Assembly: GCA_002269645.1 (NCBI GenBank)
Contig: NIVC01001236.1
Location: 15,494 to 79,493 of the forward strand
Reading direction: 5' to 3'
Source of the DNA: Macrostomum lignano
Lineage: Eukaryota
Length of the DNA stretch: 64,000 nucleotides
Positions 1 through 56,877 of the stretch are shown piece by piece. Numbering within the stretch: position 1 is the first letter of the stretch; each line of letters opens with the position of its first letter. Below the pieces are notes generated by a model. It saw only the letters and a list, made by a program, of their open reading frames with translations. It had not been told where the DNA came from and did not search any database. Both the position numbers and the translations under genes were made by a program.

Positions 1-1100
1 TTGAGCATGATGGTGCCCAGGGTGTTGTCCGCCCGCACGATCAACTGCGCCCGGCTGCCGCCCTCCGCCTCCGCCGGCTTGACGTGCACGCAGCCGACGC
101 CCTTCTCCTTCCACTGTTTGGCCTCGCCGGCGGCCATATAGAACAGCTTGCACTTCTGGCTGAACACGGCGCCGTCCTCGCGAATCTCCCGCGTCTCCGG
201 CTTCGGCGGCTCGTATTCTTCGTCTTCCTGCTCCTCCTGGGAGCTCGAGGCAGCCGCGGCGGAGGCGGCGGCGAAACCGCCAGGCCCGAACAGGGACAGG
301 CCACCAGGTGGCTGTTGCGGCAGCGCCGCCCCCGGCCCTGAGTTGAATTTGAATCCTGTGAACCCACTCGACGCTGTCGTCAAGCCAGTCGTTGACGTTG
401 CCGACGTCGCCGTCGTTGTCGTTGTTGAAGTCGACGAAGCCGTCGTTGACTTGGCTGACGCGCCAAAAAAGAATGTTGCCGTTGTGGCCGCACCGTCAGT
501 CGCCGGCTTCTGCGGCTGCTGCGAGTTGAAGCTAAACGTGGCAGGCATCGCAGGCGCCATCGTGGTGGCCGTGGTGGCAGCAGTCGTCGGTGCCGATGCC
601 GCGGTGGACGTAGTCGCGGCGGAGAAGTTGAACTTTGCCGGACTTGTCGACGCCTTCAAAGGCGCTGCCAGCGTTGTTGAAGTCGTCGTCGGAGTCGCCG
701 CCGCAGCGGCCGCCGTTCCAGTCGACGAATTTGCAGTTGCCGACGACTCCACGTACGGGTGCCGGCGCTCGATGTCGGCCAGGTGGCGCTCGTAGTCGCG
801 GAACACGGGCGTGAGAACGCAGTAGGGGCTGTCAGCCACGTGACTCTGAATCCAGCGCAGCACGGACTGGTTCAGCGCCTTCAGCTGGGCCAGGTGGGCG
901 GCATTCGGATCGGCGGCGGGCGTTGCCGATTTCGCCGTTGTTGTCGTCGACGAGGCCGCCAGCGAATCGGTGGTGGTGGCGGCGGTGGCGTTGGCCGAGA
1001 AGTTGAAAGCCAAAGAGGGGGCTGTCGTGGCCGACGCGGCCTGGGCACCGAAGCCGGTGAAGCCAGTGAACGACTTGAAGAGCCCGCCAGTGCCTTTGCC
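1..1100 (-). CDS. NUP50: Nucleoporin Nup50, coding exon 3 (runs off the window start)
   Basis: Phase-0 acceptor (ccggcag|GGC) at 1100. Open frame GKGTGGLFKSFTGFTGFG...LKALNQSVLRWIQSHVADSPYCVLTPVFRDYERHLADIE (Nup50 conserved helical block), Phe-rich low-complexity segments, then a Ran-binding domain EEYEPPKPETREIREDGAVFSQKCKLFY...WKEKGVG...QLIVRADNTLGTIML. This frame is absent from the ORF track. Confidence 0.93.
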
Positions 1101-1258
1101 CTGCCGGGTCAGAGAAGAGTTTTGCTGTATAACTGTGAGCATGGTTTGTCCGCAACATGGGCCGTTCAGACTCACCATATTAACTGCATATTCCCTGGGC
1201 ATTTGAATTTCAAGCTGTTTCTCGCTCTCATGGGCTTAAAACTAATATCCAACTATTC

Positions 1259-5734: not shown

Positions 5735-5943
5735 GCTGTTTAGTCCAAGGACTGGGGGGGTCACCACACACCCTCAATTTATACCCTAGCTAATGCTGGT
5801 ACCCATTTTACAGCTGGGTGAACTGAAGTAATAGAGTTAAGTGGTCTTGCTCAAGGACACAAATTGTTCCAGTGGGATCGGGAAATCGAACCCCCGACCT
5901 TCCAGTCGTGAGGCCGACGCTCTAACCACTAGGCTACAACCCC
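5735..5943 (-). mobile_element. tRNA-derived SINE (CORE-like body), copy 1
   Basis: Minus strand has an A-box (TAGCCTAGTGG) and B-box (GGTTCGATTTCC), then tgtgtccttgagcaagaccacttaac...cagctgtaaaatggg, resembling the MIR/CORE domain. Homologous copy at ~43510. Confidence 0.8.
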
Positions 5944-7706: not shown

Positions 7707-7712
7707 TTTAAT
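7707..7712 (-). terminator. Candidate polyadenylation signal ATTAAA of the peptide gene
   Basis: ATTAAA ~180 nt downstream of the stop codon on the minus strand. Confidence 0.35.
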
Positions 7713-7890
7713 CGTTGTGTTTCCTAATTTCGCATACTATATAGTTTAACCTGTTATGTGTGCAGAAAAATTGAAATCTAACATTGTGCAACTTTTTTTC
7801 TTCGCATTTTTGTTTTGCAAAGTGCAACGGTGCGAAAATTGTTTGTCTTTCTTGTCCATAGAGAAGCGCTCAAAGCGCTCTGGCTCGCAC

Positions 7891-8024
7891 TCAGGCCGGA
7901 GCCGGTTTGGTGCACACGCAATAGCAGACGCTCGTCTTCGGATTGAAGTAGCCGATGCACTGGCGCTCCGGCCCGAAGTGCACCTTGCATCGGTAGCTGC
8001 AGAACGGCACGAAAGCTTGGTGCG
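7891..8024 (-). CDS. Secreted six-cysteine defensin-like prepro-peptide, exon 2
   Basis: Acceptor ttctgttccag|CG, phase 1. Encodes (T)HQAFVPFCSYRCKVHFGPERQCIGYFNPKTSVCYCVCTKPAPA-stop. Confidence 0.8.
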
Positions 8025-8103
8025 CTGGAACAGAAAGTGAACCGGGGATCAGAAAAAAGTTCTGCTGTTTTGTTCCTAAAAGCATTACGAGCTGTCAACT
8101 CAC

Positions 8104-8230
8104 TGTCCATGCGAATTCGCTTGACCTCCGTTCGGGACAGCTCCATCGGGCTGGGGCGCCGCAGCGCCTGGCCAGCGGAAATCAGCCAACCGAGCAGGAA
8201 GATGATCACAGCAGCTTTGCTAGCAGACAT
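8104..8230 (-). CDS. Secreted six-cysteine defensin-like prepro-peptide, exon 1 (signal peptide and pro-segment)
   Basis: ATG at 8230, MSASKAAVIIFLLGWLISAGQALRRPSPMELSRTEVKRIRMD, then A|gtgagt donor. The 79-nt intron joins in frame to exon 2, giving 86 aa. Confidence 0.8.
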
Positions 8231-8326
8231 GGCCAGAGCTTTTGGAGTTTTGGAAGCTTTTGTATCAACATGCAGAAGGGAGACTTGGGAGATTGCTGCT
8301 TCAAAACAGACGGCCCAATGTTTTCT

Positions 8327-8334
8327 CTTTTATA
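8327..8334 (-). promoter_or_regulatory. TATA box of the cysteine-rich peptide gene
   Basis: TATAAAAG on the minus strand ~100 nt upstream of the ATG. Confidence 0.55.
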
Positions 8335-9656: not shown

Positions 9657-9944
9657 CTGAAAGCAAAATAAAAAAGTCAGGCATATAAATTTTGATTAAA
9701 ATTTTCCAAATGAAAATCTGGAAACAAACAATAAAAAATTTTGAACACAACTTTTTTGAAGCAGCGAAAGCCACGCCACGCTAAGCCAAGCTAAACCTCT
9801 GATCTCAAAGTCACAAAGTCCACCTCAGTCCACCATCGGACTGACCTTTTTCTTGAGAACTCCACACTGTAACGTGACAAATGAAACTCAACGAGCGTAA
9901 CAGTCAGACACGCACTGAGCAGCTCAGTAGTAACAGGTACTCAC

Positions 9945-10484
9945 CGTGGTGACCCGCGATTCGAATCCCACCGCCAGCGGAGGGCAGCGGCAGGCCCGGA
10001 AATGGCGGAAGTCCGGCCGGAAACGGGAACTGAACGCCACCGCCACCGCTAGCGCCGCCGCCACCACCACCACCACCGCCACCGCCGCTGTTTCCAACGC
10101 CAGCTGTAATCGGCGGAGGCGGACTGCGAGTGTCGCCGGCGGAGCTGCTGCCACTGCCGTTGGCAGTTGGTCGCTTCGGGGGCGGAGGCTGATGATCAGC
10201 CACGCCTCCGGGAACGAAGGACGCCACTCCGGCTGTGTCGCTTCCGCTGGATGACCGCTTCAGCGAGCCGCCACCGCCAGCGCCGTTTCCTGAATCTCCA
10301 TTGAAACCCTTGTTAGCTGCGGCAGCGACGGCCGCGGAGCTGAGATCTTTGGGAGATGCGTCGGACAGGTTCTGGGGATGGAGAGCGTGGTGATGATGAG
10401 GATGCGGCTGGTGATGCTGGTGATGCCGCTCGTCTCCAGGAGTGGCGCGAAGCACCGGCGGAGTGAGGCAGGCGAAGTCGCGGT
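9945..10484 (-). CDS. ARID3: ARID3/dead ringer coding exon 5 (His/Gly/Pro-rich)
   Basis: 540 nt, tttcag| acceptor and |gtgagt donor, phases 1/1 compatible with neighbouring exons. Confidence 0.85.
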
Positions 10485-10611
10485 CTGAAAGAGGGTGAAT
10501 TCAGAATTTATCAATGGTTAACCTTCAGAAATAAAATATGGTAAAATGATGAAAACTTGCTAACTACTCTACTCCCTAGTAGTAGGCCAAGAGAATTATT
10601 CTTAGCCTCAC

Positions 10612-10811
10612 CTGACATGGCCTTGCCGGTGAGCATTGAACTGTGATAGGTGAGCAGCGGCGGCAGGCCGCCTGGGTTCGGGCTGCACTCGAAGGCGGGG
10701 TAGTTCGGCCGCCTGCCCTCCCGCCTGTTGCCGTCGATGGCCGCTTGAAGCTCGCCCGGGCTGCTCAGCTTCAGCTTCTCGCACTCGTACGGGTACAGGT
10801 ATTTCATGTAC
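10612..10811 (-). CDS. ARID3: ARID3/dead ringer coding exon 4 (ARID C-terminus, extended ARID)
   Basis: YMKYLYPYECEKLKLSSPGELQAAIDGNRREGRR. 200 nt, phases 2/1. Confidence 0.95.
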
Positions 10812-10884
10812 CTGCGAGGAGATGGGCAACAGATGAGCTGGTTACGAATTTTCAACTGTTAGTGCCGTATCACCGTGCTACATT

Positions 10885-11271
10885 AAGATAGCATCATCAA
10901 GCTACTCTCAAGATAGCATCATCAAGCTACTCTCAAGATAGCATCATCAAGCTACTCTCAAGATAGCATCATCAAGCTACTCTCAAGATAGCATCATCAA
11001 GCTACTCTCAAGATAGCATCATCAAGCTACTCTCAAGATAGCATCATCAAGCTACTCTCAAGATAGCATCATCAAGCTACTCTCAAGATAGCATCATCAA
11101 GCTACTCTCAAGATAGCATCATCAAGCTACTCTCAAGATAGCATCATCACGCTACTCTCAAGATAGCATCATCAAGCTACTCTCAAGATAGCATCATCAA
11201 GCTACTCTCAAGATAGCATCATCAAGCTACTCTCAAGATAGCATCATCAAGCTACTCTCAAGATAGCATCA
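10885..11271. repeat. 25-bp minisatellite AAGATAGCATCATCAAGCTACTCTC (~15 copies) in ARID3 intron
   Basis: Near-perfect tandem array with one visible variant near 11150. Confidence 0.97.
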
Positions 11272-11300
11272 CAGCAACAAGAAAGCACTGATCAACTCAC

Positions 11301-11484
11301 TGAGTCCTCAGTGTGAAAGCGGCGCTGGTGATGGATGACGGCAGGTTGAGACCCTTGGTGATCTCTCGCCAGAGCTTCTTGTTAATGACTTCAACGAGGC
11401 CACCTTTGCTCACTACGAGACGGAAGAGCTCGTAAAGATCCAGGACCTGCTTAGCCATGATGGGGATTCTGTTCACCGGCGTGC
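11301..11484 (-). CDS. ARID3: ARID3/dead ringer coding exon 3 (ARID core)
   Basis: GTPVNRIPIMAKQVLDLYELFRLVVSKGGLVEVINKKLWREITKGLNLPSSITSAAFTLRTQ. 184 nt, canonical splice sites. Confidence 0.97.
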
Positions 11485-12580
11485 CTGCAGCGGGGGAGGA
11501 AAGAGGGAATTGAAGAAATGGGATTCGAAGAAAATGAATGATAGAGAGATAGCAAAAGAAACAAGCGATTAGAATCCCTACACCCTCTGCTTCATTCCTC
11601 GTTCCCGTCGCCACTCCGATCCCCAGTTCCCCGGGTCCTTGTCCCCATATGCGCTTGATGTTAATGAAGATTGATCTGGCATTTGTTGCAACAAGAAGAA
11701 AGGCTAAAAGAGAGCGGGGGCGAGGGGGGAATTAGTGGACAAGGACAGGCCTCGGCTCGTATGATTTGTTTAATTAAGCAAGATCCCCTCTCGTCCAGAT
11801 AACTGGGGATAAATGGGGATCGGGGATCGCCAGCCGGCCGCAACTGTTCAGCACTCGGTCGCACTTTGAAGAAGCTATTATAAAAAATGAGAGGCAACAG
11901 AGACGAAGAGGAAGAAATGCGGAAGGCGATCGTGCAATCGGGCCGCCCGGTCCTCAGGAGAGGTAATTAAAAGTGGCGCCCCATGACGCAGCTTAGAGAC
12001 CGGGCCGCGATCCCGAGCGAGGAATTGGGGAAATCTCGGCGGCGGGGGCAACAGTTGTCGGGAAAATCAAAATCGCCCCGATGCTCGCAGCCCCCCCCCC
12101 CCAACAATTCCGCAGCGGCTTGTCACGACGTCAAGAGGAGACGGCATTCCATCGCTGCCTTCTGATATCAAGAACTCCCCGCGGCATTTCCCCCATCGCT
12201 GGACATTGCAATCTCTCTCTTGTCTTCCATTTTTCCAACATTTCCTCCAAAGTCTTTTTCCCGCCCCTCCTGTTGCCAATTAAACCCGGGGGAATCCTTT
12301 CCCCTATAGCACAGGCAATTACATAAAGCGGACAAGACTACATGGCAACGGGAGCAAAACTGGGAGCAGCGACTACATGGAGCGGACAAAATTACATGGT
12401 GATAAAAATTGAAAATTTAATATTCAATCGAAAGATCACGGCTAGAAAAAAATTATAAAATATTTTTTAAGAAAGATGATCTAAAATTAATCTAATAAAT
12501 GAACTTTTTGCATTGTTTGTAGTACTACTTTTTATAGAACAGGCCTACTAACTTTCTTAGTAGTGAAGACGTACAGAATC

Positions 12581-12708
12581 GGACAGAATTACCTTGACTT
12601 TGCTCCCAATTAGGACAGAATTACCTTGACTTTGCTCCCAACTAGGACAGAATTACCTTGATTTTGCTCCCAACTAGGACAGAATTACCTTGATTTTGCT
12701 CCCAACTA
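12581..12708. repeat. 32-bp tandem repeat (4 copies), related to the 48-bp array
   Basis: GGACAGAATTACCTTGA(C/T)TTTGCTCCCAACTA units. Confidence 0.9.
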
Positions 12709-12729
12709 CATAGATAGACTGTAGAAAAT

Positions 12730-13390
12730 TAACCCGCAGTGAGCCGCACTAATCCAACGGTGACCATCACTGACCTAATCCAAGTATCGATCAGTGACCC
12801 GCTTAATGGCAAGTGTTCTTCACTGACCCGAACTGATCCAAGTGGCCTTCAGTGACAGGCATTAATCCAAGTGGCCTTCAGTGACAGGCATTAATCCAAG
12901 TGGCCTTCAGTGACAGGCATTAATCCAAGTGGCCTTCAGTGACCCGCACTAATCCAAGTGACCATCAGTGACCCGCACTAATCCAAGTGACCATCAGTGA
13001 CTAGCACTAATCCAAGTGACCATCAGTGACCCGCACTAATCTAACAGTGACAATCACTGACCCGCACTAATCCAAGTGACCATCAATGACCGGCACTAAT
13101 CCAACTGACCATCAGTGACCCGCACTAATCCAAGTGACCATCAGTGACCCGCACTAATCCAAGTGAACTTTAGTGACCCGCACTAATCCAAGTGACCATC
13201 AGTGACCCGCACTAATCCTACAGTGACAATCTCTGACCCGCACTAATCCAAGTGGCCTTCAGTGACCCAACTAATCCAAGTGACCATCAGTGACCCGCAC
13301 TAATCCAAGTGACCATCAGTGACCCGCACTAATCCAAGTGACCATCAGTGACCTGCATTAATCCAAGTGAACTTTAGTGAATCGCACTAA
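12730..13390. repeat. 29-bp minisatellite TAATCCAAGTGACCATCAGTGACCCGCAC, array 1
   Basis: ~22 moderately diverged copies. Confidence 0.93.
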
Positions 13391-13409
13391 TCTACGGGAC
13401 TCAGTTACT

Positions 13410-15218
13410 GGACACAATTACCTGATATCTGCTCCCCACTACACAGATCTGGAGGCCGGACAGAATTACCTGAAATTTGCTCCCCACTACACAAATTTGG
13501 AGGCCGGACGGAATTACCTGAAATTTGCTCCCCACTACACAAATTTGGAGGCCGGACGGAATTACCTGAAATTTGCTCCCCACTACACAAATTTGGAGGC
13601 CGGACGGAATTACCTGAAATTTGCTCCCCACTACACAAATTTGGAGGCCGGACGGAATTACCTGAAATTTGCTCCCCACTACACAAATCTGGAGGCCGGA
13701 CAGAATTACCTGAAATTTGCTCCCCACTACACAGATCTGGAGGCCGGACAGAATTACCTGAGATTTGCTCCCCACTACACAAATCTGGAGGCCGGACAGA
13801 ATTACCTGAAATTTGCTCCCCACTACACAAATCTGGAGGCCGGACAGAATTACCTGATATCTGCTCCCCACTACACAGATCTGGAGGCCGGACAGAATTA
13901 CCTGAAATTTGCTCCCCACTACACAAATCTGGAGGCCGGACAGAATTACCTGAAATCTGCTCCCCACTACACAGATCTGGAGGCCGGACAGAATTACCTG
14001 AAATTTGCTCCCCACTACACAGATCTGGAGGCCGGACAGAATTACCTGAAATTTGCTCCCCACTACACAAATCTGGAGGCCGGACGGAATTACCTGAAAT
14101 TTGCTCCCCACTACACAGATCTGGAGGCCGGACAGAATTACCTGAAATTTGCTCCCCACTACACAAATCTGGAGGCCGGACAGAATTACCTGAAATTTGC
14201 TCCCCACTACACAGATCTGGAGGCCGGACAGAATTACCTGAAATTTGCTCCCCACTACACAGATCTGGAGGCCGGACAGAATTACCTGAAATTTGCTCCC
14301 CACTACACAGATCTGGAGGCCGGACAGAATTACCTGAAATTTGCTCCCCACTACACAGATCTGGAGGCCGGACAGAATTACCTGAAATTTGCTCCCCACT
14401 ACACAAATCTGGAGGCCGGACAGAATTACCTGAAATTTGCTCCCCACTACACAGATCTGGAGGCCGGACAGAATTACCTGAAATTTGCTCCCCACTACAC
14501 AAATCTGGAGGCCGGACAGAATTACCTGAAATTTGCTCCCCACTACACAAATCTGGAGGCCGGACAGAATTACCTGAAATTTGCTCCCCACTACACAGAT
14601 CTGGAGGCCGGACAGAATTACCTGAAATTTGCTCCCCACTACACAAATCTGGAGGCCGGACAGAATTACCTGAAATTTGCTCCCCACTACACAGATCTGG
14701 AGGCCGGACAGAATTACCTGATATCTGCTCCCCACTACACAGATCTGGAGGCCGGACAGAATTACCTGAGATTTGCTCCCCACTACACAAATCTGGAGGC
14801 CGGACAGAATTACCTGAAATTTGCTCCCCACTACACAGATCTGGAGGCCGGACAGAATTACCTGAAATTTGCTCCCCACTACACAGATCTGGAGGCCGGA
14901 CAGAATTACCTGAAATTTGCTCCCCACTACACAGATCTGGAGGCCGGACAGAATTACCTGAAATTTGCTCCCCACTACACAGATCTGGAGGCCGGACAGA
15001 ATTACCTGAAATTTGCTCCCCACTACACAAATCTGGAGGCCGGACAGAATTACCTGAGATTTGCTCCCCACTACACAAATCTGGAGGCCGGACAGAATTA
15101 CCTGAAATTTGCTCCCCACTACACAGATCTGGAGGCCGGACAGAATTACCTGAAATTTGCTCCCCACTACACAGATCTGGAGGCCGGACAGAATTACCTG
15201 AGATTTGCTCCCCACTAC
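13410..15218. repeat. 48-bp minisatellite (~38 copies)
   Basis: GGAGGCCGGACAGAATTACCTGAAATTTGCTCCCCACTACACA(G/A)ATCT. It explains the 16-aa periodic ORFs on both strands. Confidence 0.97.
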
Positions 15219-15244
15219 AGAAATAGACTATAGAAAAGTATTCC

Positions 15245-15410
15245 ATGTGACCTTCAGTGACCCGCACTAATCCTAGTGACCATCAGTGACTATCACTAAT
15301 CCAAGCGACCATCAGTGACCCGCACTAATCTTAGTGACCATCAGTGAGCCGCACTAATCCAAGTGACCATTACTGACCCGCATTAATCCAAGTAGCCTTT
15401 AGTGACCCGC
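15245..15410. repeat. 29-bp minisatellite, array 2
   Basis: Same unit as 12730-13390, ~6 copies. Confidence 0.9.
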
Positions 15411-15546: not shown

Positions 15547-18500
15547 CAGGCTGTCCTCACTGGCCTCTGTATATCTTAGCAGCCTTGGCTGTCCTATACT
15601 TAGAACAAAGAGCCAGGCCCAACTCAGCATTTTCACTCAAACACACAGAGCTCTTGGAGTCGCTATAATCTTCATCTAACTGACTCACCGGCCTCTGTAA
15701 ATCTCGGCAGCTTAGACCTCCTATACTTAGAACGGAGTAGGCTCTAAGTCTGTTTTTTCACTCAAACATAAAGGGAAAGTCTTGGGGCCGCTAAAACCTC
15801 TTCATCTAAGAGATTCACCCGCCTCAGTCAGTCAGTCAGTCAGTCAGTCAGTCAGAAAGAAGCGGAGAGAAGCTGGGATTATCAGAAAGAAGCGGAGAGA
15901 AGCTGGGATTATCAGAGGGAAGCGGAGAGAAGCTGGGATTATCAGAGGGAAGCGGAGAGAAGCTGGGATTATCAGAGAGAAGCGGAAAGAAGCTGGAATT
16001 ATCAGAAAGAAGCGGAGAGAAACTGGGATTATCAGAGGGAAGCGGAGAGAAGCTGGGATTATCAGAGGGAAGCGAAGAGAAGCTGGGATTATCAGAAAGA
16101 GGCGGAGAGAAGCTGCGATTATCAGAGGGAAGCGGAGAGAAGCTGGGATTATCAGAGGGAAGCGGAAAGAAGCTGAGATTATCAGAGAGAAGCGGAGAGA
16201 AGCTGGGATTTTCAGAGAGAAGCGGAGAGAAGCTGGGATATCAGAGGGAAGCGAAGAGAAGCTGGGATTATTAGAAAGAGGCGGAGAGAAGCTGGGATTA
16301 TCAGAGGGAAGCGGAGAGAAGCTGGGATTATCAGAGGGAAGCGGAGAGAAGCTGGGATATCAGAGGGAAGCGGAGAGAAGCTGGGATATCAGAGGGAAGC
16401 GAAGAGAAGCTGGGATTATCAGAGGGAAGCGGAGAGAAGCTGGGATTATCAGAGGGAAGCGGAGAGAAGCTGGGATTATCAGAGGGAAGCGGAGGGAAGC
16501 TGGGATTATCAGAGAGAAGCGGAGAGAAGCTGGGAAGCTGAGAAATCGATGCATACAAAATACGTTAGAAGGCAAAGGTGCGAAAGAACGAGAGGGGCGC
16601 AAGGCCGTAGCCAGCGTATTTTTATCAACACAGAATGAATGCAATTCTACACTAGCAAAGATAAAAGGTTTGGTTTGGTTTCAGCTAGGCGATGAAAAGT
16701 GTGAAAAGTTGCTTGAGCCGTGTGTATCTGCGAGTGAGGAGAAATCGATAATAAAATGAATATAGTTTTGTGGGAAAAGACAACAATTCACAGCGCAAGC
16801 TAGCTTTACCTCGCGACATGGAGTCCAGCATGGAATAACTCTGCATATTCGCTCAAACATAAAGGGAAAGTCTTGGGCCGCTATAACTCCTTCATCGAAC
16901 TGATTCAGCCGCCTCTGTAAATCTCGGCAGCTTGGACCTCCTATACTTAGAACAGACTAGGCTCTAAGTCTGCTTTTTCACTCAAACATAAAGGGAAAGT
17001 CTTGGGGCCGCTAAAACCAAGAGACTCACCCGCCTCGGCTTATCCCAGCAGCTAAGACTATCGATATATATATTTACGACAAAGAGTCTGGCATGGAATA
17101 ACTCTGCATATTCACTCAAGCACACAGGGATGGTCTTGGAGCCGGTATATTATCTTCACCTAAGAGACTCACCCGCCTCAGTCAGTCAGTCAGCCCCTAA
17201 CACGGGCTCAGCTCTCAGCTCACCCAGAATTTCAAATGCACTGCATGGCAACTCGAATCGCTCGAGTCGCTCCAGCATTCACAGCCACCTGGGCTGGCCG
17301 AGAGGTGACCGCAAACTGCGGTTTGGAAACCTCTTGGCAACGAAGACCTCTCTCCAGCTGCAGCCATGCTGTCTGTGGTCGGCCTCTCAGCTCCACAACC
17401 CTAGCCTTTGAGACAAACCATATGTCGAGCTTTCGAATCGGTTCGAAAACCCCACAGCTGGTTTGCGCAACCGCAACAAACACACCTGGGGCATCTCAAC
17501 TCGACTGATTCTAAAAATAGCACATACTCTGGTCTACAAACCGGGCAATGAAGACACGTCCTTGAGCCGCATGCAGAGACAGGAGCATCTACAGACTACA
17601 GGACCATTAGGCTTTGGCCATTTCTTCTAGAAGGTCCGCTTTTTGAGTTTGAAACCTCAATGCGACAATCAATGCCAGTGAGCAAAAATCGATGCAGAAG
17701 AGATTCATCAGAAAGACTGGTGGAGACGGGCGTAGAGAAGCTAGGATCAGCGAAGACAAGCTGGAATATCAGAGGGAAGCGGAGAGAAGCTGGGATTATC
17801 AGAGAGAAGCGGAGAGAAGCTGGGATTATCAGAAAGAGGCGGAGAGAAGCTGGGAATATCAGAGGGAAGCGGAGAGAAGCTGGGATTATCAGAGAGAAGC
17901 GGAGAGAAGCTGGGATATCAGAGGGAAGCGAAGAGAAGCTGGGATTATCAGAGGGAAGCGGAAAGAAGCTGGGATATCAGAGGGAAGCGGAGAGAAGCTG
18001 GGATTATTAGAAAGAGGCGGAGAGAAGCTGGGATTATTAGAAAGAGGCGGAGAGAAGCTGGGATTATCAGAAAGAGGCGGAGAGAAGCTGGGATTATTAG
18101 AAAGAGGCGGAAAGAATCTGGGATTATTAGAAAGAGGCGGAGAGAAGCTGGGATTATCAGAAAGAGGCGGAGAGAAGCTGGGATTATTAGAAAGAGGCGG
18201 AAAGAATCTGGGATTATTAGAAAGAGGCGGAGAGAAGCTGGGATTATCAGAAAGAGGCGGAGAGAAGCTGGGATTATTAGAAAGCAGCGGAAGGAAGCTG
18301 GGATTATCAGAGAGAAGCGAAAAGAAGCTGGGATTATCAGAAAGAGGCGGAGAGAAGCTGGGATTATCAGAGGGAAGCGGAGAGAAGCTGGGATTATCAG
18401 AGAGAAGCGGAAAGAAGCTGGGATTCTTAGAAAGAGGCGGAGAGAAGCTGGGATTATTAGAAAGAGGCGGAGAGAAGCTGGGATTATCAGAAAGAGGCGG

Positions 18501-21500
18501 AGAGAAGCTGGGATTATTAGAAAGAGGCGGAAAGAATCTGGGATTATTAGAAAGAGGCGGAGAGAAGCTGGGATTATCAGAAAGAGGCGGAGAGAAGCTG
18601 GGATTATTAGAAAGAGGCGGAAAGAAGCTGGGATTATCAGAGGGAAGCGGAGGGAAGCTGGGATTATCAGAGAGAAGCGGGGAGAAGCTGGGAAGCTGAG
18701 AAATCGATGCATACAAAATACGTTAGAAGGCAAAGGTGCGAAAGAACGAGAGGGGCGCAAGGCCGTAGCCAGCGTATTTTTATCAACACAGAATGGATGC
18801 AATTCTACACTAGCAAAGATAAAAGGTTTGGTTTGGTTTCAGCTAGGCGATGAAAAGTGTGAAAAGTTGCTTGAGCCGTGTGCATCTGCGATTGAGGAGA
18901 AATCGATAATAAAATGAATATAGTTTTGTGGGAAAAGACAACAATTCACAGCGCAAGCTAGCTTTACCTCGCGACATGGAGTCCAGCATGGAATAACTCT
19001 GCATATTCGCTCAAACATAAAGGGAAAGTCTTGGGGCCGCTATAACTCCTTCATCGAACTGATTCAGCCGCCTCTGTATATCTTAGCAGCCTTGGCTGTC
19101 CTATACTTAGAACAAAGAGCCAGACCCAACTCAGCATTTTCACTCAAACACACAGAGCTCTTGGAATCGCTATAATCTTCATCTAACTGACTCACTGGCC
19201 TCTGTATATCTTAGCAGCCTTGGCTGTCCTATACTTAGAACAAAGAGCCAGGCCTAGCTCTGCAATATCACTCAAACACACAGAGCTCTTGGAATCGCTA
19301 TAATCTTCATCTAACTGACTCACCGGCCTCTGTAAATCTCGGCAGCTTAGACCTCCTATACTTAGAACGGAGTAGGCTCTAAGTCTGTTTTTTCACTCAA
19401 ACATAAAGGGAAAGTCTTGGGGCCGCTAAAACCTCTTCATCTAAGAGATTCACCCGCCTCAGTCAGTCAGTCAGTCAGTCAGTCAAAAAGAAGCGGAGAG
19501 AAGCTGGGATATCAAAAAGAAGCGGAGAGAAGCTGGGATATCAAAAAGAAGCGGAGAGAAGCTGGGATTATCAGAGGGAAGCGGAGAAAAGCTGGGATTA
19601 TCAGAAAGAAGCGGAAAGAAGCTGGGATTATCAGAGAGAAGCGGAAAGAAGCTGGGATTATCAGAGAGAAGCGGAAAGAAGCTGGGATTATCAGAGAGAA
19701 GCGGAGAGAAGCTGGGATTATCAGAAAGAAGCGGAAAGAAGCTGGGATTATCAGAGAGAAGCGGAGAGAAACTGGGATTATCAGAAAGCAGCGGAAGGAA
19801 GCTGGGATTATCAGAAAGAGGCGGAGAGAAGCTGGGATTATCAGAGGGAAGCGGAGAGAAGCTGGGATTATCAGAGAGAAGCGGAAAGAAGCTGGGATTA
19901 TTAGAAAGAGGCGGAGAAAAGCTGGGATTATTAGAAAGAGGCGGAGAGAAGCTGGGATTATTAGAAAGAGGCGGAAAGAAGCTGGGATTATCAGAGGGAA
20001 GCGGAGGGAAGCTGGGATTATCAGAGAGAAGCGGGGAGAAGCTGGGAAGCTGAGAAATCGATGCATACAAAATACGTTAGAAGGCAAAGGTGCGAAAGAA
20101 CGAGAGGGGCGCAAGGCCGTAGCCAGCGTATTTTTATCAACACAGAATGGATGCAATTCTACACTAGCAAAGATAAAAGGTTTGGTTTGGTTTCAGCTAG
20201 GCGATGAAAAGTGTGAAAAGTTGCTTGAGCCGTGTGCATCTGCGATTGAGGAGAAATCGATAATAAAATGAATATAGTTTTGTGGGAAAAGACAACAATT
20301 CACAGCGCAAGCTAGCTTTACCTCGCGACATGGAGTCCAGCATGGAATAACTCTGCATATTCGCTCAAACATAAAGGGAAAGTCTTGGGGCCGCTATAAC
20401 TCCTTCATCGAACTGATTCAGCCGCCTCTGTATATCTTAGCAGCCTTGGCTGTCCTATACTTAGAACAAAGAGCCAGACCCAACTCAGCATTTTCACTCA
20501 AACACACAGAGCTCTTGGAATCGCTATAATCTTCATCTAACTGACTCACTGGCCTCTGTATATCTTAGCAGCCTTGGCTGTCCTATACTTAGAACAAAGA
20601 GCCAGGCCTAGCTCTGCAATATCACTCAAACACACAGAGCTCTTGGAATCGCTATAATCTTCATCTAACTGACTCACCGGCCTCTGTAAATCTCGGCAGC
20701 TTAGACCTCCTATACTTAGAACGGAGTAGGCTCTAAGTCTGTTTTTTCACTCAAACATAAAGGGAAAGTCTTGGGGCCGCTAAAACCTCTTCATCTAAGA
20801 GATTCACCCGCCTCAGTCAGTCAGTCAGTCAGTCAGTCAAAAAGAAGCGGAGAGAAGCTGGGATATCAAAAAGAAGCGGAGAGAAGCTGGGATATCAAAA
20901 AGAAGCGGAGAGAAGCTGGGATTATCAGAGGGAAGCGGAGAAAAGCTGGGATTATCAGAAAGAAGCGGAAAGAAGCTGGGATTATCAGAGAGAAGCGGAA
21001 AGAAGCTGGGATTATCAGAGAGAAGCGGAAAGAAGCTGGGATTATCAGAGAGAAGCGGAGAGAAGCTGGGATTATCAGAAAGAAGCGGAAAGAAGCTGGG
21101 ATTATCAGAGAGAAGCGGAGAGAAACTGGGATTATCAGAAAGCAGCGGAAGGAAGCTGGGATTATCAGAAAGAGGCGGAGAGAAGCTGGGATTATCAGAG
21201 GGAAGCGGAGAGAAGCTGGGATTATCAGAGAGAAGCGGAAAGAAGCTGGGATTATCAGAAAGAGGCGGAGAGAAGCTGGGATTATTAGAAAGAGGCGGAA
21301 AGAAGCTGGGATTATTAGAAAGAGGCGGAGAGAAGCTGAGATTATCAGAAAGAGGCGGAGAGAAGCTGGGATTATCAGAAAGAGGCGGAGAGAAGCTGGA
21401 TTATTAGTAAGAGGCGGAGAGATGCTGGATTATCAGAAAGAGGCGGAGAGAAGCTGGGATTATTAGAAAGAGGCGGAAAGAAGCTGGGATTATCAGAGAG

Positions 21501-24500
21501 AAGCGGAGAGAAGCTGGGAAGCTGAGAAATCGATGCATACAAAATACGTTAGAAGGCAAAGGTGCGAAAGAACGAGAGGGGCGCAAGGCCGTAGCCAGCG
21601 TATTTTTATCAACACAGAATGGATGCAATTCTACACTAGCAAAGATAAAAGGTTTGGTTTGGTTTCAGCTAGGCGATGAAAAGTGTGAAAAGTTGCTTGA
21701 ACCGTGTGTATCTGCGAGTGAGGAGAAATCGATAATAAAATGAATATAGTTTTGTGGGAAAAGACAACAATTCACAGCGCAAGCTAGCTTTACCTCGCGA
21801 CATGGAGTCCAGCATGGAATAACTCTGCATATTCGCTCAAGCATAAAGGGAAAGTCTTGGGGCCGCTATAACTCCTTCATCGAACTGATTCAGCCGCCTC
21901 TGTAAATCTCGGCAGCTTGGACCTCCTATACTTAGAACAGACTAGGCTCTAAGTCTGCTTTTTCACTCAAACATAAAGGGAAAGTCTTGGGGCCGCTAAA
22001 ACCAAGAGACTCACCCGCCTCGGCTTATCCCAGCAGCTAAGACTATCGATATATATATTTACGACAAAGAGTCTGGCATGGAATAACTCTGCATATTCAC
22101 TCAAGCACACAGGGATGGTCTTGGAGCCGGTATATTATCTTCACCTAAGAGACTCACCCGCCTCAGTCAGTCAGTCAGCCCCTAACACGGGCTCAGCTCT
22201 CAGCTCACCCAGAATTTCAAATGCACTGCATGGCAACTCGAATCGCTCGAGTCGCTCCAGCATTCACAGCCACCTGGGCTGGCCGAGAGGTGACCGCAAA
22301 CTGCGGTTTGGAAACCTCTTGGCAACGAAGACCTCTCTCCAGCTGCAGCCATGCTGTCTGTGGTCGGCCTCTCAGCTCCACAACCCTAGCCTTTGAGACA
22401 AACCATATGTCGAGCTTTCGAATCGGTTCGAAAACCCCACAGCTGGTTTGCGCAACCGCAACAAACACACCTGGGGCATCTCAACTCGACTGATTCTAAA
22501 AATAGCACATACTCTGGTCTACAAACCGGGCAATGAAGACACGTCCTTGAGCCGCATGCAGAGACAGGAGCATCTACAGACTACAGGACCATTAGGCTTT
22601 GGCCATTTCTTCTAGAAGGTCCGCTTTTTGAGTTTGAAACCTCAATGCGACAATCAATGCCAGTGAGCAAAAATCGATGCAGAAGAGATTCATCAGAAAG
22701 ACTGGTGGAGACGGGCGTAGAGAAGCTAGGATCAGCGAAGACAAGCTGGAATATCAGAGGGAAGCGGAGAGAAGCTGGGATTATCAGAGAGAAGCGGAGA
22801 GAAGCTGGGATTATCAGAAAGAGGCGGAGAGAAGCTGGGAATATCAGAGGGAAGCGGAGAGAAGCTGGGATTATCAGAGAGAAGCGGAGAGAAGCTGGGA
22901 TATCAGAGGGAAGCGAAGAGAAGCTGGGATTATCAGAGGGAAGCGGAAAGAAGCTGGGATATCAGAGGGAAGCGGAGAGAAGCTGGGATTATTAGAAAGA
23001 GGCGGAGAGAAGCTGGGATTATTAGAAAGAGGCGGAGAGAAGCTGGGATTATCAGAAAGAGGCGGAGAGAAGCTGGGATTATTAGAAAGAGGCGGAAAGA
23101 ATCTGGGATTATTAGAAAGAGGCGGAGAGAAGCTGGGATTATCAGAAAGAGGCGGAGAGAAGCTGGGATTATTAGAAAGAGGCGGAAAGAATCTGGGATT
23201 ATTAGAAAGAGGCGGAGAGAAGCTGGGATTATCAGAAAGAGGCGGAGAGAAGCTGGGATTATTAGAAAGCAGCGGAAGGAAGCTGGGATTATCAGAGAGA
23301 AGCGAAAAGAAGCTGGGATTATCAGAAAGAGGCGGAGAGAAGCTGGGATTATCAGAGGGAAGCGGAGAGAAGCTGGGATTATCAGAGAGAAGCGGAAAGA
23401 AGCTGGGATTCTTAGAAAGAGGCGGAGAGAAGCTGGGATTATTAGAAAGAGGCGGAGAGAAGCTGGGATTATCAGAAAGAGGCGGAGAGAAGCTGGGATT
23501 ATTAGAAAGAGGCGGAAAGAATCTGGGATTATTAGAAAGAGGCGGAGAGAAGCTGGGATTATCAGAAAGAGGCGGAGAGAAGCTGGGATTATTAGAAAGA
23601 GGCGGAAAGAAGCTGGGATTATCAGAGGGAAGCGGAGGGAAGCTGGGATTATCAGAGAGAAGCGGGGAGAAGCTGGGAAGCTGAGAAATCGATGCATACA
23701 AAATACGTTAGAAGGCAAAGGTGCGAAAGAACGAGAGGGGCGCAAGGCCGTAGCCAGCGTATTTTTATCAACACAGAATGGATGCAATTCTACACTAGCA
23801 AAGATAAAAGGTTTGGTTTGGTTTCAGCTAGGCGATGAAAAGTGTGAAAAGTTGCTTGAGCCGTGTGCATCTGCGATTGAGGAGAAATCGATAATAAAAT
23901 GAATATAGTTTTGTGGGAAAAGACAACAATTCACAGCGCAAGCTAGCTTTACCTCGCGACATGGAGTCCAGCATGGAATAACTCTGCATATTCGCTCAAA
24001 CATAAAGGGAAAGTCTTGGGGCCGCTATAACTCCTTCATCGAACTGATTCAGCCGCCTCTGTATATCTTAGCAGCCTTGGCTGTCCTATACTTAGAACAA
24101 AGAGCCAGACCCAACTCAGCATTTTCACTCAAACACACAGAGCTCTTGGAATCGCTATAATCTTCATCTAACTGACTCACTGGCCTCTGTATATCTTAGC
24201 AGCCTTGGCTGTCCTATACTTAGAACAAAGAGCCAGGCCTAGCTCTGCAATATCACTCAAACACACAGAGCTCTTGGAATCGCTATAATCTTCATCTAAC
24301 TGACTCACCGGCCTCTGTAAATCTCGGCAGCTTAGACCTCCTATACTTAGAACGGAGTAGGCTCTAAGTCTGTTTTTTCACTCAAACATAAAGGGAAAGT
24401 CTTGGGGCCGCTAAAACCTCTTCATCTAAGAGATTCACCCGCCTCAGTCAGTCAGTCAGTCAGTCAGTCAAAAAGAAGCGGAGAGAAGCTGGGATATCAA

Positions 24501-27500
24501 AAAGAAGCGGAGAGAAGCTGGGATATCAAAAAGAAGCGGAGAGAAGCTGGGATTATCAGAGGGAAGCGGAGAAAAGCTGGGATTATCAGAAAGAAGCGGA
24601 AAGAAGCTGGGATTATCAGAGAGAAGCGGAAAGAAGCTGGGATTATCAGAGAGAAGCGGAAAGAAGCTGGGATTATCAGAGAGAAGCGGAGAGAAGCTGG
24701 GATTATCAGAAAGAAGCGGAAAGAAGCTGGGATTATCAGAGAGAAGCGGAGAGAAACTGGGATTATCAGAAAGCAGCGGAAGGAAGCTGGGATTATCAGA
24801 AAGAGGCGGAGAGAAGCTGGGATTATCAGAGGGAAGCGGAGAGAAGCTGGGATTATCAGAGAGAAGCGGAAAGAAGCTGGGATTATTAGAAAGAGGCGGA
24901 GAAAAGCTGGGATTATTAGAAAGAGGCGGAGAGAAGCTGGGATTATTAGAAAGAGGCGGAAAGAAGCTGGGATTATCAGAGGGAAGCGGAGGGAAGCTGG
25001 GATTATCAGAGAGAAGCGGGGAGAAGCTGGGAAGCTGAGAAATCGATGCATACAAAATACGTTAGAAGGCAAAGGTGCGAAAGAACGAGAGGGGCGCAAG
25101 GCCGTAGCCAGCGTATTTTTATCAACACAGAATGGATGCAATTCTACACTAGCAAAGATAAAAGGTTTGGTTTGGTTTCAGCTAGGCGATGAAAAGTGTG
25201 AAAAGTTGCTTGAGCCGTGTGCATCTGCGATTGAGGAGAAATCGATAATAAAATGAATATAGTTTTGTGGGAAAAGACAACAATTCACAGCGCAAGCTAG
25301 CTTTACCTCGCGACATGGAGTCCAGCATGGAATAACTCTGCATATTCGCTCAAACATAAAGGGAAAGTCTTGGGGCCGCTATAACTCCTTCATCGAACTG
25401 ATTCAGCCGCCTCTGTATATCTTAGCAGCCTTGGCTGTCCTATACTTAGAACAAAGAGCCAGACCCAACTCAGCATTTTCACTCAAACACACAGAGCTCT
25501 TGGAATCGCTATAATCTTCATCTAACTGACTCACTGGCCTCTGTATATCTTAGCAGCCTTGGCTGTCCTATACTTAGAACAAAGAGCCAGGCCTAGCTCT
25601 GCAATATCACTCAAACACACAGAGCTCTTGGAATCGCTATAATCTTCATCTAACTGACTCACCGGCCTCTGTAAATCTCGGCAGCTTAGACCTCCTATAC
25701 TTAGAACGGAGTAGGCTCTAAGTCTGTTTTTTCACTCAAACATAAAGGGAAAGTCTTGGGGCCGCTAAAACCTCTTCATCTAAGAGATTCACCCGCCTCA
25801 GTCAGTCAGTCAGTCAGTCAGTCAAAAAGAAGCGGAGAGAAGCTGGGATATCAAAAAGAAGCGGAGAGAAGCTGGGATATCAAAAAGAAGCGGAGAGAAG
25901 CTGGGATTATCAGAGGGAAGCGGAGAAAAGCTGGGATTATCAGAAAGAAGCGGAAAGAAGCTGGGATTATCAGAGAGAAGCGGAAAGAAGCTGGGATTAT
26001 CAGAGAGAAGCGGAAAGAAGCTGGGATTATCAGAGAGAAGCGGAGAGAAGCTGGGATTATCAGAAAGAAGCGGAAAGAAGCTGGGATTATCAGAGAGAAG
26101 CGGAGAGAAACTGGGATTATCAGAAAGCAGCGGAAGGAAGCTGGGATTATCAGAAAGAGGCGGAGAGAAGCTGGGATTATCAGAGGGAAGCGGAGAGAAG
26201 CTGGGATTATCAGAGAGAAGCGGAAAGAAGCTGGGATTATTAGAAAGAGGCGGAGAAAAGCTGGGATTATTAGAAAGAGGCGGAGAGAAGCTGGGATTAT
26301 CAGAAAGAGGCGGAGAGAAGCTGGGATTATTAGAAAGAGGCGGAAAGAAGCTGGGATTATTAGAAAGAGGCGGAGAGAAGCTGAGATTATCAGAAAGAGG
26401 CGGAGAGAAGCTGGGATTATCAGAAAGAGGCGGAGAGAAGCTGGGATTATTAGTAAGAGGCGGAGAGATGCTGGGATTATCAGAAAGAGGCGGAGAGAAG
26501 CTGGGATTATTAGAAAGAGGCGGAAAGAAGCTGGGATTATCAGAGAGAAGCGGAGAGAAGCTGGGAAGCTGAGAAATCGATGCATACAAAATACGTTAGA
26601 AGGCAAAGGTGCGAAAGAACGAGAGGGGCGCAAGGCCGTAGCCAGCGTATTTTTATCAACACAGAATGGATGCAATTCTACACTAGCAAAGATAAAAGGT
26701 TTGGTTTGGTTTCAGCTAGGCGATGAAAAGTGTGAAAAGTTGCTTGAACCGTGTGTATCTGCGAGTGAGGAGAAATCGATAATAAAATGAATATAGTTTT
26801 GTGGGAAAAGACAACAATTCACAGCGCAAGCTAGCTTTACCTCGCGACATGGAGTCCAGCATGGAATAACTCTGCATATTCGCTCAAGCATAAAGGGAAA
26901 GTCTTGGGGCCGCTATAACTCCTTCATCGAACTGATTCAGCCGCCTCTGTATATCTTAGCAGCCTTGGCTGTCCTATACTTAGAACAAAGAGCCAGACCC
27001 AACTCAGCATTTTCACTCAAACACACAGAGCTCTTAGAATCGCTATAATCTTCATCTAACTGACTCACTGGCCTCTGTATATCTTAGCAGCCTTGGATGT
27101 CCTATACTTAGAACAAAGAGACAGACCCAACTCAGCATTTTCACTCAAACATAAAGGGAAAGTCTTGGGGCCGCTATAACTCCTTCATCGAACTGATTCA
27201 GCCGCCTCTGTATATCTTAGCAGCCTTGGCTGTCCTATACTTAGAACAAAGAGCCAGACCCAACTCAGCATTTTCACTCAAACACACAGAGCTCTTGGAA
27301 TCGCTATAATCTTCATCTAACTGACTCACTGGCCTCTGTATATCTTAGCAGCCTTGGCTGTCCTATACTTAGAACAAAGAGCCAGGCCTAGCTCTGCAAT
27401 ATCACTCAAACACACAGAGCTCTTGGAATCGCTATAATCTTCATCTAACTGACTCACCGGCCTCTGTAAATCTCGGCAGCTTAGACCTCCTATACTTAGA

Positions 27501-33500: not shown

Positions 33501-34233
33501 AGCCAGACCCAACTCAGCATTTTCACTCAAACACACAGAGCTCTTAGAATCGCTATAATCTTCATCTAACTGACTCACTGGCCTCTGTATATCTTAGCAG
33601 CCTTGGATGTCCTATACTTAGAACAAAGAGACAGACCCAACTCAGCATTTTCACTCAAACATAAAGGGAAAGTCTTGGGGCCGCTATAACTCCTTCATCG
33701 AACTGATTCAGCCGCCTCTGTATATCTTAGCAGCCTTGGCTGTCCTATACTTAGAACAAAGAGCCAGACCCAACTCAGCATTTCACACAAACACACAGAG
33801 CTCTTGGAATCGCTATAATCTTCATCTAACTGACTCACTGGCCTCTGTATATCTTAGCAGCCTTGGCTGTCCTATACTTAGAACAAAGAGCCAGGCCTAG
33901 CTCTGCAATATCACTCAAACACACAGAGCTCTTGGAATCGCTATAATCTTCATCTAACTGACTCACTGGCCTCTGTATATCTTAGCAGCCTTGGCTGTCC
34001 TATACTTAGAACAAAGAGCCAGACCCAACTCAGCATTTTCACTCAAACACACAGAGCTCTTGGAATCGCTATAATCTTCATCTAACTGACTCACTGGCCT
34101 CTGTATATCTTAGCAGCCTTGGCTGTCCTATACTTAGAACAAAGAGCCAGACCCAACTCAGCATTTTCACTCAAACACACAGAGCTCTTGGAATCGCTAT
34201 AATCTTCATCTAACTGACTCACCGGCCTCTGTA
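15547..34233. repeat. Higher-order composite satellite (~18.7 kb; 11 units of 1354-2159 bp)
   Basis: Each unit has 128-bp subrepeats, (GTCA)n, a 30-bp purine-rich array (AGAAAGAGGCGGAGAGAAGCTGGGATTATC) and a ~300-bp non-repetitive segment. That segment starts at 16541, 18699, 20053, 21525, 23684, 25038, 26572, 28187, 29721, 31519 and 33082. Confidence 0.96.
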
Positions 34234-35669: not shown

Positions 35670-36488
<819 letters not shown>

Positions 36489-38485: not shown

Positions 38486-39130
38486 TAGATAGGTAGGTAG
38501 GTAGATAGGTAGATAGGTAGATGGGTAGATAGGTAGGTAGGTAGGTAGGTAGGTAGGTAGGTAGGTAGGTAGGTAGGTAGATAGGTAGATAGGTAGATAG
38601 GTAGATAGGTAGGTAGGTAGATAGGTAGATAGGTAGGTAGGTAGGTAGGTAGGTAGGTAGGTAGGTAGATAGGTAGGTAGGTAGGTAGGTTGATAGGTAG
38701 ATAGGTAGATAGGTAGGTAGGTAGGTAGGTAGGTAGGCAGGTAGGTAGGTAGGTAGGTAGGTAGGTAGGTAGGTAGGTAGGTAGGTAGGTAGGTAGGTAG
38801 ATAGGTAGGTAGGTAGATAGGTAGGTAGATAGGTAGGTAGATAGGTAGGTAGGTAGGTAGGTAGGTAGGTAGGTAGGTAGGTAGATAGGTAGATAGGTAG
38901 GTAGGTAGGTAGGTAGGTAGGTAGGTAGGTAGTTAGGTAGATAGGTAGATAGGTCGGTAGGTAGGTAGGTAGGTAGATAGGTCGGTAGGTAGGTAGGTAG
39001 GTAGGTAAGTAGGTGATAGGTAGGTGGGTAGTTAGTTTATTAGCAGATAGACAGGTAGGTTGATGAGTAGAGCAGATACAATGGTAGACAAGTAGAAGAT
39101 AAGCAGGTAGATAAATAGATAGATAGGTAG
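38486..39130. repeat. (TAGG)n/(TAGA)n microsatellite
   Basis: Directly visible. Source of the PTYL-repeat ORF. Confidence 0.97.
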
Positions 39131-49740: not shown

Positions 49741-50448
49741 AGTGACAGTGACAGTGACAGTCACAGTGACAGTGACAGTGACAGTGACAGTGACAGTGAC
49801 AGTGACAGTGACAGTCACAGTGACAGTCACAGTGACAGTGACAGTGACAGTGACAGTGACAGTGACAGTGACAGTGACAGTGACAGTGACAGTGACAGTG
49901 ACAGTGACAGTGACAGTCACAGTTACAGGGACAGTGACAGTGACAGTAACAGTGACAGTAACAGTGACAGTGACAGTGACAGTGACAGTAACAGTAACAG
50001 TGACAGTGACAGTGACAGTGACAGTGACAGTGACAGTGACAGTGACAGTGACAGTGACAGTGACAGTGACAGTGACAGTGACAGTGACAGTGACAGTGAC
50101 AGTGACAGTGACAGTGACAGTGACAGTGACAGTGACAGTGACAGTGACAGTCACAGTTACAGGGACAGTGACAGTGACAGTGACAGTGACAGTGACAGTG
50201 ACAGTGACAGTGACAGTGACAGTGACAGTCACAGTTACAGGGACAGTGACAGTGACAGTAACAGTGACAGTAACAGTGACAGTGACAGTGACAGTGACAG
50301 TAACAGTAACAGTGACAGTGACAGTGACAGTGACAGTGACAGTGACAGTGACAGTGACAGTGACAGTGACAGTGACAGTGACAGTGACAGTGACAGTGAC
50401 AGTGACAGTGACAGTGACAGTGACAGTGACAGTGACAGTGACAGTGAC
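49741..50448. repeat. (AGTGAC)n hexanucleotide repeat (~118 units) with a degenerate 5' flank from ~49570
   Basis: Directly visible. Produces the SD/VT repeat ORFs. Confidence 0.98.
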
Positions 50449-56715: not shown

Positions 56716-56877
56716 GAGAAAAAGCGAGGTCTGCGAGTACGTCTTTCCAAGAAAGCACAGCAATTCAGGCACGCATGTGCATTGGCTCATTTATTGTGAC
56801 TAAAGTGATTAAGGCAAGGTAGCCTGACTACTATTAGCAGTATGTGCATTTAAAGGCTCTATTAATGCCTTCCACAG

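Follow-up and report, generated by a model that had tools for sequence, protein, structure and literature searches.

What does the minus strand encode at 8230..7891 of a 64-kb stretch of animal DNA (the window, meaning the whole stretch analysed)? A prediction made from the letters alone had placed there a two-exon gene for a cationic, six-cysteine, secreted peptide resembling defensins and mytilins, raising the question of whether such a gene is real and, if it is, what kind of peptide it makes. We find at window 8334..7707 (-) a small and intact protein-coding gene with a putative TATA promoter, in an animal genome that is most probably that of a macrostomid flatworm or a near relation. It is a real gene for a variant secreted peptide, probably CS-αβ-like (CS-αβ standing for cysteine-stabilized alpha-beta), with a shifted sixth cysteine, and by analogy with known peptides of this kind its role may lie in defence. 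The evidence comes from the structure of the gene itself, from a full-length homologue in Macrostomum lignano, from comparison with known cysteine scaffolds and from structure prediction. All features of the peptide gene lie on the minus strand, and their coordinates are collected in Table 1.

Gene structure and precursor

Splicing in silico reproduces letter for letter the predicted arrangement of two exons joined across a 79-nt GT-AG intron, and yields a coding sequence (CDS) of 261 nt that translates into an 86-aa precursor, MSASKAAVIIFLLGWLISAGQALRRPSPMELSRTEVKRIRMDTHQAFVPFCSYRCKVHFGPERQCIGYFNPKTSVCYCVCTKPAPA. The start, the stop and the consensus splice sites are all intact, and the six-cysteine domain lies unsplit within exon 2. 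The CDS is richer in GC (61%, and 78% at third codon positions, GC3) than the intron (43%) and the 3' flank (36%), and this contrast in composition supports its coding status. The upstream TATAAAAG and the downstream ATTAAA, both part of the original prediction, are present as well (Table 1), the former as a TATA box with a putative promoter function. A loose CS-αβ cysteine pattern occurs twice in the six frames of the window, and one of the two occurrences is the peptide gene; neither tblastn nor a cysteine-pattern scan found a paralogue of the peptide within the window. The unspliced 150-aa read-through open reading frame (ORF; 7778..8230) was rejected as the product, having neither an in-frame cysteine domain nor homologue support. 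We regard 8230..7891 as almost certainly a real spliced gene.

The layout of the precursor also agrees with what had been predicted, namely a signal peptide, a pro-segment ending in the dibasic KR and a short cationic mature peptide. The signal peptide is supported by its hydrophobic core and by small residues at positions -3 and -1; the (-3,-1) rule puts the predicted cleavage site after Ala22, a column of the alignment at which the homologue described below has the corresponding residues G-L-A. The predicted mature peptide has a mass of 5.5 kDa, a pI of 8.9 and a net charge of about +4 (+3.9; ProtParam). The dibasic site, the six K/R against two D/E among the charged residues of the mature part, and the cysteine spacing C-x3-C-x9-C-x10-C-x-C-x-C were all confirmed on the spliced product. 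The precursor ends four residues past the last cysteine, and the first 12 mature residues are free of cysteine both here and in the homologue. The product is very probably a secreted, processed and disulfide-rich peptide.

A homologue in Macrostomum lignano

An exhaustive HMMER pass with the exon-2 translation against 1.84 billion cluster representatives returned a single convincing relative, P0001, a protein of 96 aa (E 4.8e-11, 61% identity). P0001 is M. lignano PAA68142.1/PAA77746.1, and a third copy, PAA67319.1, is 98% identical. The corresponding genes, BOX15_Mlig020375g1/g2/g3 (referred to here as Mlig020375), are annotated as hypothetical proteins, with UniProt entries A0A1I8H4X4 and A0A267F2J5. 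A word-index protein search found no match to the 86-aa product and, when given the family alignment, found P0001 only; no relative turned up when metagenomes were scanned with patterns of the family.

P0001 is 57% identical to the window precursor over the full length and 63% identical in the mature part, and the six cysteines, whose conservation in any homologue had been proposed as a check on the prediction, are kept at identical spacing. The signal peptides are alike (MSA...LIS.G.A), with two additional residues in P0001. The pro-segment is poorly conserved and is eight residues longer in P0001 (24 aa versus 16 aa). The KR and the 12 residues that follow it are nearly invariant, such that KRIRMDTHxAFVPFC is shared almost in full, and the KRIRMDTH part of this block spans the proposed splice junction. 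The net charge is +2.9 in P0001 versus +3.9 in the window peptide.

The gene structures agree as well. At the two Mlig020375 loci compared, the intron occupies the same codon position in the same phase 1, has a GTGAGT donor and follows an exon 1 that ends in 'GAC A'; its length is 331 or 330 nt, versus 79 nt in the window gene. A 19-nt stretch over the exon 1/intron boundary, ATTCGCATGGACAGTGAGT, is identical in the two genes. Mlig020375 also has a TATA box, TATATAAGAGAGAG, about 75-80 nt 5' of its ATG, for which the window counterpart is TATAAAAGAGAAAA. Because Mlig_3_7 was annotated by genome-guided assembly of RNA-seq (PMC5730564), the homologous junction in Mlig020375 is transcript-based. 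The gene model of the homologue thus uses the counterpart of the junction for which the original prediction had proposed an RNA check.

The peptide gene is under purifying selection. The ratio of nonsynonymous to synonymous divergence (dN/dS) against Mlig020375 is 0.17 over the whole CDS, where dS is saturated (about 2), and 0.31-0.48 in the mature part, the codons of which comprise 19 that are identical, 11 with synonymous and 18 with non-synonymous differences. We take Mlig020375 to be a true homologue of the window gene. The two genes stand at distinct loci and are related either as an orthologue in another species or as an old paralogue; the conserved signal peptide and junction point to a macrostomid relative or to such a paralogue. 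The loci are different because there is no synteny between them (no 20-mers are shared in the flanks of the window gene and of the Mlig020375 loci, for which 41 kb of M. lignano DNA was compared), because the neighbouring genes differ (a protein kinase at Mlig020375 versus ARID3 and a RanBP1-domain gene at the window locus) and because dS is about 0.9-2. No repeats of more than 77% identity are common to the window and the same 41 kb.

Two further proteins, P0002 and P0003, were considered as homologues and rejected. They are propeller-like repeat proteins of 481-566 aa that match the hairpin segment only, with scores summed over repeats. Each carries at least 10 copies of FAPxxxxC[VI]G[VT]F[ND]PxTxxFxC[VI]D, which resembles the peptide hairpin segment FGPERQCIGYFNPKTSVCYC, and they give a weak SGL/propeller Pfam signal. 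We judge this likeness to be a convergent beta-hairpin similarity, not homology.

Relation to defensins and mytilins

The CS-αβ framework reads Cys1...Cys2X3Cys3...Cys4...Cys5X1Cys6, with CxxxC and CxC as the determinants of the fold (PMC5234102). Both motifs are present in the window peptide, as C13-SYR-C17 and C38-Y-C40 (mature numbering), and both are kept in P0001. The full consensus is absent: there is no cysteine before the helix, and the sixth cysteine trails as C-x-C-x-C. The original prediction had pointed to this missing N-terminal cysteine and to the CxCxC tail, and both hold for the window peptide and for P0001. Mollusc and arthropod defensin genes typically place the mature peptide in an unsplit exon after a phase-1 intron (PMC6435467), and the window gene and Mlig020375 share this organization, with the cysteine domain in exon 2 after a phase-1 intron.

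The spacing given for invertebrate defensins, CX4-15CX2HCX6-9GX1CX4-9CX1C (PMC6435467), is not that of the window peptide, which has no first cysteine, an R in place of the H before Cys3, no G at position -2 of Cys4, and 10 residues between C4 and C5. Its C-x3-C-x9-C spacing is the same as in Phormia defensin A (1ICA; C16-x3-C20-x9-C30). Six-cysteine invertebrate defensins such as 1ICA, the Anopheles defensin 2NY8 and BmKDfsin3 (5XA6) likewise have a terminal C-x-C, a precursor made up of signal, pro-segment and dibasic site, and three disulfides, which for the window peptide are predicted. In contrast to these defensins, the window peptide lacks the Cys1-Cys4 bond, has an extra cysteine two residues past Cys6 and has a hairpin that is five residues longer.

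Comparison with individual scaffolds is suggestive of mytilin B (2EEM) as the closest in sequence, in keeping with the mytilin-like character originally predicted. In pairwise BLASTP, mytilin B is matched with E values of 0.007 and 0.003 and 35-42% identity, these E values being from single comparisons and uncorrected for database size. In the P0001 alignment, the six cysteines are in register with mytilin C1, C2, C4, C5, C6 and C7, and the positions of C3 and C8 are not cysteine. A composition-preserving shuffle against mytilin B gave z 4.6-5.1 (p 0.0005-0.002), the best of seven CS-αβ comparators, the second best being the Anopheles defensin (window peptide, z 3.5). The likeness stays short of database-level evidence, since mytilin B did not come up among matches with E up to 10 when phmmer was run on the Protein Data Bank (PDB).

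Mytilins (from Mytilus, Perna and Trichomya) share with the window peptide a helix followed by a two-stranded hairpin, here predicted, a C-x3-C start, a C-x-C-x-C end, 10-11 residues between this end and the preceding cysteine, a cationic character, secretion (again predicted here) and a lophotrochozoan origin. Their eight cysteines pair C1-C5/C2-C6/C3-C7/C4-C8, the gene comprises four exons, the precursor carries an anionic extension at its C-terminus, and the charge is +7 to +10 (PMC7168163). The window peptide has six cysteines, not the four-disulfide array C-X3-C-X3-C-X4-C-X11-C-X-C-X-C-X2-C; its pro-segment is N-terminal, its precursor has no C-terminal extension and its gene has two exons. 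It also carries a 12-residue N-terminal tail, unlike mytilins. The window peptide is not a mytilin, since none of the defining features of mytilins is found in it. The mussel defensin MGD-1 (1FJN) and the oyster defensin Cg-Def (2B68) likewise have a cysteine after the CxC, which in them bonds to the hairpin region, with the connectivity C1-C5, C2-C6, C3-C7, C4-C8 (PMC7168163). Unlike the window peptide, they have four disulfides and keep the canonical N-terminal cysteine, and their shuffle z is -0.4 to 1.7.

Predicted fold and disulfide pairing

AlphaFold2 was run on the exon-2 peptide with the homologues as alignment (exon-2 numbering, used in this paragraph, is mature numbering minus 5). 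The model has a mean predicted local distance difference test score (pLDDT) of 82, with the five models ranging over 77-82, and consists of a helix (residues 4-16) and two strands (22-27 and 32-37). The CxxxC (Cys8 and Cys12) is predicted to lie in the helix, and Cys33, Cys35 and Cys37 on the last strand; strand 1 opens with Cys22, which faces Cys37 in the modelled hairpin register. In a full-length model of P0001 (pLDDT 62) the helix and hairpin recur, and the KRIRMD region adds a further strand at low confidence. The helix and beta-hairpin that the original prediction had called for are therefore what AlphaFold2 returns. Support from the models for a CS-αβ-like fold extends to secondary structure and to where the motifs lie, and no further; we consider it probable that the peptide has such a fold.

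The third disulfide would most likely be a hairpin clamp, Cys27-Cys42 (mature numbering), because the canonical N-terminal cysteine is absent. The analogy is with a mytilin without C3 and C8: the orphaned partners, C7 and C4, could then pair with each other, and in the window peptide these correspond to Cys42 and Cys27.

Proposed maturation and role

We propose that transcription from the TATA promoter would be followed by removal of the 79-nt phase-1 intron. The 86-aa prepropeptide would enter the endoplasmic reticulum and be cut by signal peptidase after Ala22, and a protease of the prohormone-convertase/furin type would cut after Lys37-Arg38, leaving a 48-aa, 5.5-kDa peptide of charge +4. 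In CS-αβ folding, Cys13 and Cys17 of the helix would be pinned to Cys38 and Cys40 on strand 2, giving the bonds 13-38, 17-40 and 27-42. Once secreted, the peptide may act as a host-defence (antibacterial) effector, by analogy with defensins and mytilins.

A processed, secreted CS-αβ peptide that serves as a defence effector is the best overall explanation, and one that we hold to be moderately likely. Taken by itself, the host-defence role, argued from analogy, stands at slightly less than an even chance. Our most far-reaching proposal is more tentative still: that this is the first CS-αβ (mytilin/defensin-related) defence family from Platyhelminthes, carried by two or more macrostomid genomes, with the Cys1-Cys4 bond replaced by the hairpin clamp.

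Alternative explanations

Several results weigh against a CS-αβ defence peptide. With E values up to 10 allowed, Pfam matched neither the window peptide nor P0001 to a defensin, PF01097 included (sub-threshold matches to YacG and Sha_B_N are noise). Neither phmmer nor a family-profile hmmsearch found a defensin among PDB sequences (the matches to L3MBTL3 and CopC are noise), and hhalign returned a probability of 0.7% when the target was an alignment of eight defensins from insects, scorpions, fungi and molluscs, each verified in the PDB. The alignment behind the structure prediction holds two distinct sequences only. A defensin match by structure search, which the original prediction had proposed to seek, did not emerge: Foldseek against the PDB, with both the exon-2 and the P0001 models, gave nothing significant, four brazzein entries appearing at a non-significant E of 0.7-3. 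Brazzein is a protein of the CS-αβ fold. Foldseek is weak for peptides of fewer than 50 residues, and its silence therefore counts little. The charge (+3.9 in the window peptide, +2.9 in P0001) lies well below the mytilin range of +7 to +10. Nothing on the site or timing of Mlig020375 expression was found in the searchable full texts or in supplements of three M. lignano papers. Finally, a survey of 33 flatworm species by HMM and BLAST, with M. lignano represented by two assemblies, reported no CS-αβ peptide and called the absence surprising (PMC10414684).

The alternative that survives best accepts a real gene and a secreted, disulfide-rich product with a role other than antimicrobial, such as a toxin or ion-channel modulator, or a function in mucus or rhabdites, in signalling or in reproduction (seminal fluid). 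The CS-αβ scaffold also occurs in toxins, sweet proteins and protease inhibitors, and brazzein is the nearest, if non-significant, Foldseek neighbour. The conserved 12-residue IRMDTHxAFVPF has no defensin counterpart and could bind a receptor, +3 to +4 is a low charge by the standard of mytilin-type antimicrobial peptides (AMPs; PMC7168163), and fungi have many atypical defensin-like peptides whose antimicrobial activity is thought to have been lost (PMC5234102). However, we found no positive evidence for such a role and no Pfam match to a toxin, hormone or seminal-fluid protein, and the gene organization, the precursor layout and the mytilin-like cysteine register point to a defence-peptide lineage. 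We consider a non-antimicrobial role rather unlikely.

It is also conceivable that the secreted, cysteine-rich peptide does not have the CS-αβ fold, its CxxxC and CxC being convergent and its cysteines paired in another way, as in a knottin-like fold or a hairpin ladder. The uniformly negative defensin sequence and profile comparisons and Foldseek searches would fit this, as would the missing canonical Cys1, the C4-C5 spacing of 10, just beyond X4-9 (PMC6435467), and the very shallow AlphaFold alignment. Set against these are AlphaFold's assignment of CxxxC to the helix and of CxCxC to the last strand at a pLDDT of 82 (77-82 over the five models), the same topology in the P0001 model, and the alignment in register of six of the eight mytilin B cysteines. 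We regard a different fold as improbable.

A non-functional locus would be two ORFs paired by chance, or a pseudogene in decay, among abundant repeats. It might be suspected where 47% of the window is tandem repeats and where neither the product nor the unspliced ORFs have an exact copy in a collection of 15 billion proteins; it is highly improbable, because the intact ORF, start, stop and splice sites and the GC3 of 78% versus an intron GC of 43% stand against it, as do the conserved full-length homologue with its shared intron position and phase, the transcript-based junction, a dN/dS below 0.5 and the retention of all six cysteine codons.

Novelty and significance

The secreted CS-αβ-like defence peptide that we favour had been put forward as possibly undescribed. 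This stands in that we found no publication on the peptide family. It falls in that P0001 is already in GenBank and in UniProt, under the automatic name 'INVERT_DEFENSINS domain-containing protein', which implies a match to the PROSITE PS51378 profile. The only trace of the family in public databases is a hypothetical, unstudied protein named automatically from PROSITE. Its sequence was not found in the part of the supplements of a helminth AMP survey that was covered.

If our reading is right, the published conclusion that flatworms have no CS-αβ peptides would be overturned and the gap filled, mytilin-like scaffolds would be older within Lophotrochozoa than Mytilidae, and the shifted sixth cysteine would be the reason why profile searches miss the family. 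The peptide would present a natural case of disulfide re-wiring on the CS-αβ scaffold and, at 48 residues, could serve peptide work as a compact template. M. lignano is amenable to transgenesis and RNA interference, making the function of the homologue directly testable. The locus also illustrates that raw sequence from repeat-rich regions can yield small peptide genes of two exons.

Genomic context

Table 1. Features of the peptide gene and simple satellite arrays of the window (aa, residues of the precursor)
Feature	Position	Strand	Details
TATA box TATAAAAG	8334..8327	-	begins 104 nt 5' of ATG; putative promoter
Exon 1, coding part	8230..8104	-	127 nt; ATG at 8230; Met1-Asp42 plus base 1 of the Thr43 codon
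Signal peptide MSASKAAVIIFLLGWLISAGQA, aa 1-22	8230..8165	-	hydrophobic core, small residues at -3/-1 (G-Q-A); predicted cleavage after A22
Pro-segment LRRPSPMELSRTEVKR, aa 23-38	8164..8117	-	ends in dibasic KR (37-38); putative cleavage site
Predicted mature-peptide coding region, aa 39-86	8116..7894, intron-interrupted	-	48 aa
Intron	8103..8025	-	79 nt; phase 1; GTGAGT donor, pyrimidine tract, CAG acceptor (GTGAGT...TTCTGTTCCAG)
Exon 2, coding part	8024..7891	-	last two bases of Thr43 to Ala86, plus TGA (7893..7891)
ATTAAA, candidate polyadenylation signal	7712..7707	-	179 nt 3' of stop; motif only
(CTAA)x208	35670-36501		
(TAGGTAGG)x69	38486-39035		
14-bp unit x180	45999-48507		GC skew +0.78 in 46001-48000
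(AGTGAC)x118	49741-50448		
17-bp unit x58	52094-53085		
19-bp purine-rich unit, 468-bp higher order	55371-56718		68-77% (weak) similarity to a purine-rich stretch that ends M. lignano locus L002

Next to the peptide gene on its upstream side, and likewise on the minus strand, an ARID3/dead-ringer orthologue has exons at 9904-11731 (-). Its ARID domain (11300-11731) is 94% identical to that of Capitella teleta, and a 25-bp satellite (10885-11271; 15.5 copies, 99% identical) occupies the intron between two ARID exons. Downstream, window 3-1235 (-) holds a 411-codon open frame with a GC3 of 0.76, FG-type repeats and a RanBP1 start (Pfam E 2.6e-05), which looks like a Nup50/RanBP-like gene running off the start of the window. 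A borderline Rfam tRNA match at 5873-5943 (-) (29.5 bits against a gathering threshold of 29, E 0.044) was not called by ARAGORN and is possibly a tRNA-derived repeat or a pseudogene.

Tandem repeats make up 47% of the window, which in composition and wealth of repeats is like M. lignano. The largest of those described here is an 18-kb composite array at 15852-34233, in which a 30-bp unit (TCAGAAAGAAGCGGAGAGAAGCTGGGATTA, 19-32 copies) and a 128-bp unit form alternating blocks, with a higher-order period of about 1.35, 3.1 or 5 kb. Its purine skew is strong (GC skew +0.16 to +0.36, AT skew +0.22 to +0.30), and it gives rise to many spurious long ORFs on both strands. Closer to the peptide gene, at 12581-15410, a 48-bp satellite (13410-15219; 37.7 copies, 97% identical) sits between 29-bp satellites (12737-13392 and 15242-15410). 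A 618-aa ORF of this region matches EZH2_N and VPS13_N in Pfam; the matches are repeat-driven, contain no passing stretch and were rejected as spurious.

Frame-shifted remnants of a long terminal repeat (LTR) retrotransposon lie at 58546-60280 (-), with a gag zinc knuckle at 59735-60280 and RVT_1 at 58959-59435 (E 1.6e-19). The sole non-satellite DNA similarity to M. lignano outside the peptide gene is a 169-bp non-coding match (69% identity, E 3e-11) between window 62081-62233, L001 19518-19672 and L002 13134-13288; it falls within the kinase-gene span of L001 and L002 and may be a common repeat or a conserved element.

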